This document shows positions 35,752-41,273 of a DNA stretch of 64,000 bases, one piece after another. Source of the DNA: Mantamonas sphyraenae STR306 (lineage: Eukaryota; Protista; CRuMs); contig JAPMXV010000026.1 of the NCBI GenBank assembly GCA_026936335.1, positions 62,001 through 126,000 of the forward strand. The letters run 5' to 3'. The notes under the pieces were generated by a model, which ran no database searches, was not told the origin of the DNA, and saw nothing but the letters and a program-made list of their open reading frames with translations. Position numbers and translations under genes: made by a program. Position 1 is the first letter of the stretch, and every line of letters begins with the position of its first letter.

Positions 35752-38714
35752 TTCTTCTTCTTCAGCTTGTACGCACCTGCGCTCGTCATGCTCAGCTTCT
35801 CCTCCATCACCATGTTGTTCAGCAGCACCTTCAGCTCCGCCGTGCTCTTGTCGTACGTGCCTTCCGTCACAAACATCTTGAGCATGTTGTGGATTTTGTC
35901 CACAGGCAGCGAGGGGAAGTTGGCAAGCATTCCCAGCACAAACTGCTCATACACACGCAGATCTTCCGCCTCCTGCGCCTCTGCCGAGCTCACTGCCACC
36001 TCCTCCTCATAGCGCACTTGGCCCGCACCCTCCTCTGCCTGTTCAAGCAACACCCACGTGTCTGTCTGCGTCTGCTTCACCACCCCGTGGTTTGCCCAGA
36101 AGCCCAGCTTGCGTCGCACCTCCTCCTCTCCCATGTGCATCGCCTCTGCCAACGCTTGCGTCGTCCACGTGCCTTCCTCCCCAAAGTACATCATGATGCT
36201 CGCCTGCGCTGGCGTCACGCTCAACTCCAGCGTCCTGTCTTCAAACTCGAGTTCCAGCTCCACCACACCCATGCTTGCCATCCACTGCAACTTCCGCGGT
36301 GTCTTGAGGGTGTAGTATTCCTCCCCATACCGTTCCATCTCCTTTGCCACCGCAGGCGGCGGCACCATCTCCTCTTCAACAATCGTTGGCCAGAACAGCT
36401 TCGACACAATTGTTGCCGTCAGCGGCACCTGCACCTCTTCACCATCCTCCTCCTCCTCCGCCTCCTCTTGCTCCTTCGACACCTGCGCTTTGTCTGCTGC
36501 CCCGACACTTGTGCTCGTGCTGGAGGAGGAGGAGGACGACGACGACGACGACGATGCCTCTGCGGAGGCGGCGCCCTCGCCCCGTGGTCGCTTGCTGCGC
36601 GACTGTTCGCCTGCGCTGGGCTGCACACTCTTGAACATGCGGTCGATGGAGATGGTGGGTCGCATCCGTGGGTCGTAGCTGCCTTCGTCCTCGCTACTGT
36701 ACTCTGGGCTGCTGCTGCCCCCACTGCTCGAGTCACCACTGCTGCCTGTGCTCTGTGTGCGTCCCCTGGCCATGGACAAGGACAAGGGATGGCCCATGCG
36801 CTGCTGCCGTTCCTTGCGCTTCTCCTTCTCTTCCGCCTCCCGTATCTTGGCCACCCTGCGTGCCTCTTGCACACGCGTCCACACACGCTTGCTGTCCTTC
36901 AGATCCCGCAGCATGATTTCGCAGTTGCGAAACACATCCTCGCCAAATCGTCGCTTCAGCATCTCCTGCATGCGCTGCTCCTTGCCCGTGTCGAAATCGG
37001 TGATCTCCAGCAATTTGTCCGCCAGCATCATGCGGTACTCGTTCACAAACACCTCTTTGCTCCCGTAGATGCTGTTCATCGTGTTCAGGATGTCCGTGCC
37101 TTCTGCGCCGCCGCCGCCGCCGTGCAGCTGTTCCATCGAGCCCGCTTCCATGTCCACTGCGCCGGGCACCCACCGCATGGGGTCTCCCGACTCTGCCGCT
37201 GCCTCTCCGTCTTCAATGATATCTCCCGCACGCCCCAACTCCTTGTACAGCTCTCCCGTCTCCTCCGTCATGCTTGTCACAATGCACCGTATCGTGTCGC
37301 TCCTGCCGGCCAGATACTGCTTCACCGGCTCACTAACCACGTCTGCTGCCATGCCGGTTGGATCCAGGATGGCCAGTACCTTGATGGCGTTGATGAACGT
37401 GCTCAGCAGCACCGGTGTGTTTGCACCCGCCACCAGCAACCGTTGTTGGAAACGACGTGCGCAGCTGTTCCGCAAGCGCACGCTGCTGTTTCGTTTCGTA
37501 CAGACACGTGCGCAGGTTGCGGATGGCTTCCATCGAGTCGGGAAAGTCCACAATGATGTCAAAGATCTCGCCGATGCGCAGGTCTGCCATGCGTTCGTGC
37601 AGGAAAAACTGCATCCGTGTGTGCCACTGTTCAAACAGCCCATGCGCACGCTCCCGTCCCAACGGACGCACCGCCTCCGAGAACCAGCGCATCAGCACCT
37701 GATTCAGCCAATTCACTGCAATCTGCAAACACGGCTCGTCATACGTGCCCGTGCACTCCTTCACCACGTGCCGCTCGATACGCTCGTACATCACCTCGCT
37801 GTACACCTCTTCAGCCCACCCCAACATCTGCATCTTGGCCAACGCCGTCGCCATCCCTCCCACCTGCTCCTCCAGGTACTGCTGCGACCTTCGATGAGCC
37901 TCCACCTCCTCCTCGTCCCGATCCGAATCCGACGCCTCCACGTCGTCGCTGTCCGATTCCTCCTCCACACTGTGTTCTCCAATGTACATGCGTGCAAAGC
38001 GGTCAAAGTGATGACGCATGAGCACACTCACCAGCTCTGCAAAGTACCCTGGCTCGCTGTTGTTCAACGCCGCCGACCAGATCGTACCCAAATCAGTCCA
38101 TTCGCCCTCCATGTGTCCCTGGTGTTTGCTCACAAGCTCCACCACTGCCTTGCACCGCTCCCATTGGCCTTCCACTTCTTCTGCTGTTTCCACTAGGGCC
38201 GCTTGCACTGCCCGCATCCTTGCTTCGTGTGCTGCCACTTCCTCGTCCTCCTCCTCCTCCTCCTCTGCGTCCTCTGCCTTTTCATCATCCCCTTCATCCT
38301 CCTCATCACTGTCGCTGTCGCTGTCCTCCTCCTTCTCGTCCAGCTCCGCCTGCTTCGCTGCCAACTCTGTGCACTCGGTCTCAAACTCGCCAAAGCGGCG
38401 CCAAAACCCGCCAAACACCGTCTGCCGCACGTACGCGCTCACCTGCGCCTGCACACGCGTGCGCACCAGAGTGTATGTTGTCCATTCGGCACTCACTCGT
38501 TCAACGTGATCTGCAACCTCCTTGTTCTCCCCTGTGGGTCCATCGCACGAGTCAGCGCGCCAAAACCCCGCGTGCGGATCAACCCCAACGCCCGCCCCGG
38601 CTCGCCACACACACTCACACACACACACTCACCCAATTTGCGGATTTCCTCCGCGTCCATCTCCTGCCACGATGCTATCGCCTCCAGCACGCCCTTGACT
38701 GCAGTGCCCGCCAT
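35748..38714 (-). CDS. ANAPC2: Anaphase-promoting complex subunit 2
   Basis: LRIGEIFDIIVDFPDS, QRLLVAGANT, ILDPTG, YLAGRSDTIRCIV, IYGSKEVFVNEYRMMLADKLL, CEIMLRDLKDSKR, FVLGMLANF; +1 break at 37448-37452. Confidence 0.9.
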
Positions 38715-38890
38715 GTCAGCTTGTCAGCTTGTTTCGCTGGAGACGTCTGCGCGCGACAAGGACAGCCAGCCAGCACAGCCAGCCAGCACACACACCACAA
38801 TGCAATGTGACCATGTTTGTACACGCATTCACACACTCTCGCATGCAATGCAAACGTGGATTCGCTCTGTGCGCTGTCAGAAACAATCAA

Positions 38891-39667
38891 ATGAGCGCAA
38901 TCTTCAACAAACTCAAGAAGATGACCAGCAAAGAGGTGGCCAAGGGCCGCGTGGTGTTTGAGGACGACCGCCACACGGCCACACTGGCCCTAGGGTGATT
39001 CTGGAACCCCGAACCTGCGTTTGCGTCCAAGAAGGGAGTCATTGTGACGCGCGTCGGCTATTCGGGGGGACTCAAGGAGAACCCGACCTACCACAGCATC
39101 GGAGACCACACCGAAACCATCCAACTGGAGTATGACCCGGAGCAGATCAGCTACGAGGATCTCCTCGTCGTCTTTTTCAGCCTCCACTCGCCATTCCGCC
39201 GAGCCTACTCCGTCCAGTACCGCTCGGCGATCTTTTATCACAACGACGAGCAAAAGGCCACCGCAGAAAAGGTCATTGCCACGCTGGAAAAGAAGCAAGG
39301 CCGCAGTGTGTACACCGACCTGGAAGAGGTGCGTTTCCACAGCCGTTTTCCTTGTTGCTCCAGGTCGCCGACGGAAGATCCCACTCACCCACCCTTCCCC
39401 CCGCACGCACAGGCCGGCACCTTTTGGATTGCCGAAGACTATCACCAGAAGTACATGCTACGGTCTCAACGTGCTGTGTTCACCTCACTTGGCCTGACCG
39501 CCGAGGAAGTGATCAGCAGCCCGCTGGCTGCCAAACTCAACGCCTTTGCCGCCGGCTACGGCTCGGCAGAGGACTTTTACCAAGTCGAGAAGGACTTTGA
39601 CCTCGACTTGGACTCCAGCGTGCGCGACAAGGTGCTCAAGAACATCACCTACAGCTCGCGCCGCTGA
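38891..39667 (+). CDS. MSRA: Selenocysteine-containing peptide methionine-S-sulfoxide reductase MsrA (Sec TGA at 38996-38998)
   Basis: ATLALG-TGA-FWNPE (GCFW motif), TRVGYSGG, NPTY, DHTETIQLEYDP, QYRSAIFYH, AEDYHQKY; 84-nt intron 39329-39412. Confidence 0.92.
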
Positions 39668-39700
39668 ATCGCCCCGACGACTCATGGTCATCCAAACCCA

Positions 39701-39747
39701 GGGAAAGCCTGCCTGTGAACTCCCGTTCGCGCAGGACTGGGCTGGAC
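39701..39747 (+). promoter_or_regulatory. Candidate GGGA-type SECIS element in the MsrA 3'UTR
   Basis: GGGAA, 12-nt arm AGCCTGCCTGTG, unpaired AA (39718-39719), loop, complementary CGCAGG-act-GGGCT, then GGAC; lower helix I weak. Confidence 0.55.
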
Positions 39748-39889
39748 AACACGACGCCGCACTGCACTGCCACACACACACCCGCAACCGTGCCACACAC
39801 AAATGACACCCGCAGTGCCAAAAGCCCGATTGATTGTCGACATCCCCGTGTGGAGACAAATGAGACTCGAGTGCGCAAACAAAAGCAAT

Positions 39890-41273
39890 TTACTTCTTGC
39901 CGCCCTTCTTGCCGGTCTTCTTGGCCTTCTTGGCAGCCTTGGCAGCCTGCACCTTGAGCACAGCCTTGACAATCCTCTGCTCCTCAATCAGGAAAGCACG
40001 CACCACACGGTTGCGCACGCACGTCGAGCACAGGTTGCCACCGTACGCGCGGTTCACCGTCTTCTGTCGCTTGCTCAGGCGGCTGTACTGACGGGGTCGA
40101 AGGCGCGGGATCTGTTGTTGACGTTGTGTGTGTGTGTGTGTGTGTCCATACATCCATCGTTCCCATTCTGCGTCAGTTTCCTCCCTTCCCCAACAACCTC
40201 CACCTTTCTCATCAATTCCCCCCTCTGCGGGCCCCCTCCCCCATCTGCGCTTCTGCACACGGCAAAATGCGGCACGTGCTCAGGGCCGCGCGCTGTTTAC
40301 ACACGGCCACAGACTTTTCTTCGACCACAATGGCGGTAGCATGTGCCCGTGACCAGCCACTGAACAAGCACACAGCATCCGCAACAGCGGGTCTTGCTCT
40401 GTGCTTTGCTCAGCCGCCTTTCAAAGCCAAACGCGCACACACACACCTGCCCATTACTTGCGAAGGGGAATCTACTTCCTCATTGCACCTGCCTCCCATG
40501 CATCCTTTCCCACCCTCCTCCACACATGCACATCCCTTTCCATCCCTCCTTCCCCTCTCTGCCCTCCTCCACACGCCTCCGCCGCTCCCCTCGCATGCAA
40601 ATCCCTGCCTCCCGCAAAACTCACCCCTCCCAGCACCTGCGGGCACTCGGCGCAGTTGTGCGGCGATGCCTTCTTCTCCGTGTACTGCAGAGTCAGCTTG
40701 CCTCCGGGCGTCTTGACCCTGTGGATGTCCCATTCCCGTGTCAGCCCTCTCTACCTCCCATTCTCCACCGCTGCATTTTCGCCCCAGCCCCATCTCCCGC
40801 CCCGTTCCCCTTCCCACACATCCCAATCCCCTCCCTGTGTCCATTCATCATCTCCCCCATCCACCGTGCCATCTCTTCATGCCCATCCTTGTCCCTGGGA
40901 CTCCCTCTCGCCTCCACACGCCCGCCTGCAAACCCCGTCCCCTTTCCCGCTTTGCCTCCAACGCCTCCTCCTCCTCCTCCTCCTTCTCTCTTGCACACCC
41001 ATCCGGTGACACACACACACACACACACAGACATCCGTGTCTCTCCTCTTCACTTACATGCGGCCCTTGTTGGACTTGGTGCGGTACGAAGTGCGGCGGC
41101 GGTAGGTAACACGCTGAACCCTGTTGGTTTTTCGTGAACGAACCAGCCGGTCGAATCCAGACCAACCCGTGTGCAGCAGCAGTCACACAGACATGCAGAC
41201 AGAGTCAGTACTTCCATAACATTCACTTGCTCGATCGCTCACACTCTCCCTCTCTCACTCGTGCAACCCACAT
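39890..41273 (-). CDS. RPL34: 60S ribosomal protein L34 (eL34), copy 2
   Basis: Same four-exon structure and apparently identical protein; TAA stop instead of TGA. Confidence 0.95.

Follow-up and report, generated by a model that had tools for sequence, protein, structure and literature searches.

In a 64,000-nucleotide window of the genome of the deep-branching protist Mantamonas sphyraenae, the reading frame of a methionine sulfoxide reductase A (MsrA) gene is interrupted by a TGA at the position of the catalytic cysteine (Cys). This locus raises the question of whether the codon is read as selenocysteine (Sec) or marks a gene that has been inactivated. The genome searched was the M. sphyraenae assembly of 25,061,354 bases in 78 contigs, and the window has a GC content of 59.2%. 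The M. sphyraenae genome has been reported as diploid and was assembled with FALCON (PMC10492846).

The MsrA frame starts with the ATG at 38891-38893. The N-terminal part of exon 1 (38891-38995, plus strand), assigned from the frame and the family motif, comprises 35 codons and ends in HTATLALG. The in-frame TGA follows at 38996-38998 (plus strand), where DNA and RNA contigs both contain it; it is the proposed Sec codon at the position of the catalytic Cys of the GCFW motif, and on its 3' side the frame continues with FWNPEPAFASKKGVIVTRVGYSGG. The remainder of exon 1 (38999-39328, plus strand) encodes the catalytic domain in 110 codons, as recognized from matches to Pfam PF01625 and the PDB. 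It is separated by an 84-nt GT..AG intron (GTGCGT...GCACAG; 39329-39412, plus strand), supported by the sequence and by RNA contigs, from exon 2 (39413-39664, plus strand). Exon 2 has 84 codons, opens with AGTFWIAEDYHQKY, encodes the end of the catalytic domain (AEDYHQKY) and a probable C-terminal helical domain, and is closed by a stop TGA at 39665-39667. The product length is 230 residues (35 + U + 110 + 84), and none of the 229 standard residues in the three coding pieces is a Cys. An alternative in-frame ATG is present at 38921, and the earliest start among the listed RNA contigs is 38944, 3' of both ATGs (38891 and 38921); the start codon and the 5' end are placed provisionally, by the frame.

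Contigs of public runs from the same organism were compared with the assembly over positions 38600-40150. Two DNA-type contigs cover 38639-39858, including the intron, and are identical to the assembly in the TGA column, while an RNA-type contig (38944-39105) spans the TGA with 0 differences. The codon is therefore TGA in DNA and RNA contigs alike, and neither TGC nor TGT. In RNA-type contigs, position 39329 continues as exon-2 letters and exon-1 letters continue at 39411, and these junctions confirm the splice 39328|39413. Only the 84-nt intron is removed, and the TGA is retained. Since the TGA is the same in DNA contigs and in spliced RNA contigs, it is explained neither by a sequencing error nor by editing, and it is not spliced out. 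In the RNA-type run, depth was approximately 850 to 1400 on the MsrA exons, collapsed in the intron, and fell to zero immediately 5' of the gene; depth on the upstream neighbor gene was approximately 24. The MsrA locus is an expressed, spliced, two-exon gene. The two haplotypes differ in its coding sequence by two single-nucleotide polymorphisms (SNPs), at 39175 and 39448, both of them synonymous. On the minus strand, a convergent RPL34 gene occupies 39890-40110, with its end 222 nt from the MsrA stop. The read contigs fragment into many short pieces at this stretch, and the sole metatranscriptome "RNA" run matched only the RPL34 ribosomal stretch within the compared region.

The product is a member of the MsrA family on both sides of the TGA. 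The piece at 38999-39328 matches Pfam PF01625 (PMSR) with an E value of 2.2e-28 and a score of 99.8 bits, against a cut-off of 23.7 bits, and in a profile scan of the genome with the PMSR model the window MsrA scored 108.7 bits with the remark "1 TGA." Exon 2 matches positions 131-149 of the PF01625 model (E value, 0.027). It also matches PF20939, the "Selenoprotein MsrA helical domain," weakly and under the 23.7-bit cut-off (E value, 6.6e-4; 19.9 bits), and over its entire length it aligns with homologues in which PF20939 is present. The best PDB matches are entries 4w8c, 4u66, and 4lwj (E value, 1.8e-28), which are structures of the selenoprotein MsrA of Clostridium oremlandii. In the alignment, full-length homologues read ATLALG-C-FW (LALG-C-FWSPD) where the window reads ATLALG-TGA-FWNPEPAF, so that the G-C/U-F-W motif position is occupied by the TGA (LALG-TGA-FWNPEP). 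The motifs VGYxGG, PTYxxxGDHxE, QY, and AEDYHQKY are conserved, every near-invariant column is matched to either side of both the TGA and the intron, and the substrate-binding residues (the Tyr and Glu of PTYxxxGDHxE and the Tyr of EDYHQ) are all present. Judged from these alignments, the window MsrA would fall within the subfamily that is typified by the C. oremlandii enzyme (CoMsrA) and has a C-terminal helical domain. The preliminary description had stated that the stop sits exactly at the catalytic residue and that the protein contains no Cys once the 84-nt intron is removed; the alignment, the three coding pieces, and the splice seen in RNA contigs bear out both statements.

Relatives were collected by a word-index search with the stop-free frame of 207 codons as the query. 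The search returned more than 4,000 MsrA relatives, the best of which share approximately 42 to 45% identity with the window protein, and no close orthologue (>50% identity) was found among them. The catalytic column was counted in the 92 anchored relatives among the 120 best of the more than 4,000. Eighty of these 92 begin just past the column, within a few residues, which is the signature of gene callers stumbling on an in-frame TGA; 7 have Cys in the column and 4 have Trp, which we read as a misread TGA. Two relatives, a Logan transcript and a Synergistaceae contig, were checked at the DNA level, and both carry a TGA exactly at the catalytic column. Within the window, TGA ends 44 of 58 long frames, is the commonest stop, and also ends the MsrA gene itself. 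Because TGA is thus an ordinary stop in the window, the genetic code has not been reassigned.

As judged by similarity searches, the M. sphyraenae genome holds a complete eukaryotic Sec machinery. It contains a tRNA-Sec with anticodon TCA (64.6 bits), SepSecS (6e-137), SelD/SPS2 (206 bits), eEFSec (4.5e-89 to human eEFSec), and SBP2 (7.8e-23 to the L7Ae region of human SBP2, besides which the matches to ribosomal eL8 are weak). PSTK is also present, and its PDB matches are solely to archaeal PSTK (2e-7). [quoted passage not shown]

Six further Sec genes were recognized in the genome, each with its Sec codon, as judged by eye, at the position expected from textbook examples. Sec lies at NVASN-U-G in GPx, at C-I-K-U in an Rdx-family protein, and at SLT-U-PPW in a deiodinase-like protein (DI); SelK ends in U-G-R-stop, and thioredoxin reductase (TR; C23:130631-133969) ends in G-C-TGA-G-stop. 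In SPS2/SelD, the Sec codon stands in K-G-TGA-G, followed by an intron and then by CKVPQ. Sep15 (C-N-C) is encoded as a Cys form, as are the two MsrB genes (RYC-I/M-NS), so that the use of Sec is selective across the methionine sulfoxide reductases of M. sphyraenae. A scan of the thioredoxin and AhpC family loci for further Sec codons gave no convincing case, and the CMD and SelO families had no match in the genome.

The SECIS elements of the six other Sec genes were found by scripted search and inspection. They share a single design: helix I and a free base precede AUGAC, helix II comes next over 11 to 16 bases, and an unpaired AAA is followed later by N-GA and, directly after it, by the return strand of helix I. 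The SPS2 element (C49:404192-404279) has the form AUGAC...AAA...CGAG and lies approximately 380 nt past the stop. The TR element is of the AUGAC type, lies approximately 290 nt downstream, and has a 4-nt bulge in helix II. The sole SECIS-like element of GPx (C3:88566-88627) is approximately 1.2 kb past the stop and nearly devoid of helix I; it reflects either an unusually long 3'UTR or an element of another transcript. The 3' cores of the Mantamonas elements are CGAG, UGAG, or UGAC and fall outside KGAW, against a published eukaryotic SECIS consensus with a UGAN/KGAW core and an apical AA (PMC3753652). General models performed poorly on these elements: Rfam SECIS families had no match at the GPx, Rdx, and DI loci, and a scan of the whole genome with RF00031 returned no SECIS. 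A covariance model built from one SECIS recovered SPS2 and SelK weakly and nothing more, with Rdx and GPx misaligned, and MAFFT produced no in-register alignment of five of the elements. A scripted descriptor, controlled against background sequence and shuffles, was used in place of the covariance model.

No canonical AUGA SECIS was found within 330 nt 3' of the MsrA gene or on the plus strand of the gene; the search used an AUGA descriptor capable of retrieving the elements of Rdx, DI, and SelK. Rfam likewise gave no SECIS in the MsrA region, a result that is uninformative because Rfam also misses the GPx, Rdx, and DI loci. A SECIS-shaped element is present at 39745-39838 (plus strand). It is intact in the read allele, the version found in the read contigs, which was rebuilt by script from the differences between the public-run contigs and the assembly; the element was recognized from this rebuilt allele, its fold, and the descriptor. 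Helix I pairs 39745-49 with 39834-38 (GACAA with UUGUC). The 5' core, ACGA (39751-54), is preceded by a free C and followed by a C. Helix II pairs 39756-65 with 39812-18 and 39824-26, giving ten pairs with a two-base bulge. The apex reads C-AAA-CC, with the unpaired AAA 11 nt past the core, and the 3' core is C-GA-U, with the GA at 39832-33. The minimum-free-energy (MFE) fold of the read allele retains both helices. The listed RNA contig stops at 39820, within the element, beside adapter letters, so that it covers the element in mRNA only up to that point.

The assembled allele carries extra letters at 39766-78, 39781-85, 39801-05, 39821-23, and 39828-31 (13, 5, 5, 3, and 4 nt, respectively). 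The read allele is accordingly 23 nt shorter in 39766-39805 and, at 39821 and 39828, is missing three and four letters, respectively; it also has G where the assembly has C at 39825. All five indels and the one SNP (39766-39832) lie inside the SECIS-shaped element, and they were found by comparing contigs of three public runs with the assembly. The assembled allele fails the descriptor, with its AAA out of place, helix II weakened, and a GAUU duplication. The simplest explanation of the difference between assembly and reads is that the cell is diploid and its haplotypes differ, the element being intact in one and disrupted in the other.

The descriptor required A-N-G-A-C followed by AAA at a distance of 10 to 14 nt, with helix I adjacent and no shorter than 4 bp and helix II no shorter than 8 bp; it was derived from the other Mantamonas SECIS elements, and any base was allowed at the U position after the candidate had been seen. 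Applied to 646,688 background bases, this descriptor gave 5 matches, 4 of which fell on the Rdx, deiodinase (twice), and SPS2 elements; the fifth is probably false. When the 3'UTR of the read allele was shuffled 20,000 times with dinucleotides preserved, 1 shuffle matched. A descriptor match with an AGGAC core on contig C9, 5' of the Cys-type MsrA paralogue and seemingly antisense to coding sequence, is likely to be spurious. The elements of all six other Sec genes have U at the second position of the quartet (AUGA), which makes ACGA an outlier, and we verified no functional precedent for an ACGA core. The ACGA element at 39745-39838 of the read allele is the likely, though not the assured, candidate for the SECIS of MsrA. 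The fuller proposal, in which ACGA is the functional SECIS, Mantamonas SBP2 accepts C where the U.U pair would stand, and the diploid cell carries the SECIS intact on one haplotype and disrupted by insertions on the other, is put forward tentatively, at slightly less than an even chance.

Alternatively, the gene may encode a Sec-MsrA whose SECIS is a different element, either the hairpin at 39691-39746 or an unrecognized structure such as the AUGAC-N12-AAAA of the assembled allele (39803-39823). We consider this unlikely. The hairpin (39691-39746, plus strand) is stable, with an MFE of -23.9 kcal/mol, is identical in all read contigs, and is unique in the genome. However, its stable fold has a 6/1 internal loop in place of tandem G.A pairs and a UCCC tetraloop in place of an apical AA, and its z score is an ordinary -1.59, with 16 of 200 shuffles equally good. 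A GGGA-core SECIS at this site (39695-39755) was rejected for the same reasons; the hairpin is probably not a SECIS. In the assembled allele, AUGAC with AAAA 12 nt on reproduces the 5' half of the pattern of all other Mantamonas SECIS elements, but it was rejected because it lacks both a helix I and a complementary strand on its 3' side and because the five letters of AUGAC at 39803 are missing from the allele of the DNA and RNA contigs. Shuffled sequences fold as well as the region 39790-39880 (z score, +0.72). Two other candidates were also set aside: an AUGAG at 39860, which has no pairing partner, a shuffle-like fold, and no counterpart in the read allele, and a stem just 3' of the UGA, of the kind formed by an SRE or a bacterial SECIS (z score, -0.5).

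A recently inactivated MsrA gene is quite improbable. Under this explanation, the Cys codon TGC or TGT has become TGA, the function is supplied by the Cys paralogue of contig 9, and the mRNA, although still made, yields only a peptide of 35 residues. It would account for the failure to find a canonical AUGA SECIS and for why the only SECIS-like element is disrupted in the assembly, and a Cys-type MsrA (GCFWC) is indeed encoded elsewhere in the genome. Against this, the sequence 3' of the TGA is intact across the intron and keeps all family-conserved residues, and both coding SNPs between the haplotypes are synonymous. The mRNA is abundant and spliced, unlike an expected target of NMD. A TGA at the catalytic column is moreover the rule among the nearest relatives (92 anchored; two checked), and the 3'UTR contains a SECIS-shaped element at a chance level of approximately 5e-5. 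Recoding of the UGA as Sec is the reading that we retain over inactivation.

Basal UGA readthrough occurs in eukaryotes, and a near-cognate tRNA for Cys or Trp could in principle insert its amino acid at the codon, without selenium, so that small amounts of enzyme with Cys or Trp would be made. This is highly improbable, given that the host keeps a dedicated, complete Sec system and several other selenoprotein genes, that an enzyme with Trp as its catalytic residue would be inactive, and that relatives in the subfamily are established selenoproteins (PMC4479559).

With Sec decoding as the preferred reading, the product would be a 230-residue methionine-S-sulfoxide reductase A in which the catalytic nucleophile is Sec. 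Recoding of the UGA would be carried out by the host Sec machinery, with SBP2 acting on a kink-turn element in the 3'UTR, for which 39745-39838 is the candidate, built like the other Mantamonas SECIS elements but with ACGA replacing AUGA. The selenolate is predicted to attack methionine-S-sulfoxide, giving a selenenic acid, and since MsrA has no Cys, this intermediate would be resolved by an external thiol. By analogy with the clostridial enzyme, the reductant is probably glutaredoxin/glutathione.

Sec-MsrA as a kind of protein is already well known from algae, invertebrates, and clostridia. What is new here is the Mantamonas lineage, a gene that would be truncated under standard annotation, and possibly a noncanonical, heterozygous SECIS. 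A literature search found no paper that pairs Mantamonas with selenoproteins, and "seleno" does not occur in the genome paper (PMC10492846). Standard gene callers would cut this MsrA at the TGA or overlook the gene. Mantamonas, near the base of Amorphea, is thus credited with a Sec-MsrA and a working Sec system with at least seven selenoprotein genes, which supports the view of an ancient and large eukaryotic selenoproteome that included a Sec-only MsrA with no Cys. Finders that look for the SECIS first would undercall this clade, as Rfam was blank on all four Sec loci scanned and the cores are CGAG, UGAG, and UGAC, with ACGA as a variant. If the ACGA SECIS and its heterozygosity prove true, then together with the other hidden Sec genes they would give the CRuMs supergroup its first selenoproteome, along with a SECIS consensus that departs from the usual one.

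Comparison with known systems places the window MsrA apart from the Cys-type enzymes of E. coli and bovine type, which are represented in this genome by the paralogue on contig 9. The two share the Pfam family and the GxFW motif. The paralogue, in contrast, reads GSGCFWCTEG, has further Cys residues and no in-frame stop, scores 227 bits with the PMSR model compared with 109 bits for the window MsrA, and belongs to a different subfamily, one without the helical domain.

Among eukaryotes, Sec-MsrA was described in Chlamydomonas and found in Ostreococcus and Thalassiosira (PMC2375036), and MSRA is among the most widely distributed Sec proteins of algae (PMC7539508). The preliminary description had held that Sec forms of MsrA occur sporadically, for example in green algae and some clostridia, and that some of them lack a resolving Cys and are recycled by glutaredoxin, a type to which CoMsrA belongs (PMC4479559). 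The Sec-MsrAs of algae and invertebrates (PMC2375036, PMC7539508, PMC3473315) resemble the Mantamonas gene in having UGA at the catalytic Cys. Their SECIS elements are in the 3'UTR and have an AUGA core, whereas the core of the Mantamonas candidate is ACGA. The nearest named database matches are truncated, "partial" MsrA proteins of sponge, starfish, and molluscs. Several animal relatives have a C-terminal Cys, which Mantamonas MsrA does not, and the Mantamonas lineage belongs to CRuMs, neither algae nor animals, with approximately 42 to 45% identity to any match.

The ACGA element resembles eukaryotic SECIS elements (PMC3753652) in its helix I, its kink-turn core with tandem GA on both strands, its helix II of approximately 10 bp, the AAA 11 nt past the core, and its location in the 3'UTR. 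It differs from them in having C for the U of AUGA and in its 3' core, CGAU.

The closest characterized counterpart is CoMsrA, the MsrA of Clostridium (Alkaliphilus) oremlandii (PDB 4u66, 4lwj-4lwm, 4w8c, and 7c13; PMC4479559, PMC4333827). CoMsrA is a 1-Cys type selenoprotein MsrA that has Sec and no Cys and is reduced by glutaredoxin (PMC4479559). The Mantamonas protein is collinear with it over the whole catalytic piece and keeps the glutamate of GDHxE. In both proteins, the Sec position is near the N terminus at the catalytic site, and Cys is absent. A helical domain is C-terminal in CoMsrA and probably also in the Mantamonas protein, whose match to PF20939 lies below the cut-off. CoMsrA has 209 residues with Sec at position 16, while the Mantamonas protein has 230 residues with the predicted Sec at position 36. 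The bacterial enzyme relies on a SECIS within the coding region and on SelB; in contrast, decoding in Mantamonas, whose gene is interrupted by an intron, must depend on an element in the 3'UTR together with SBP2 and eEFSec.
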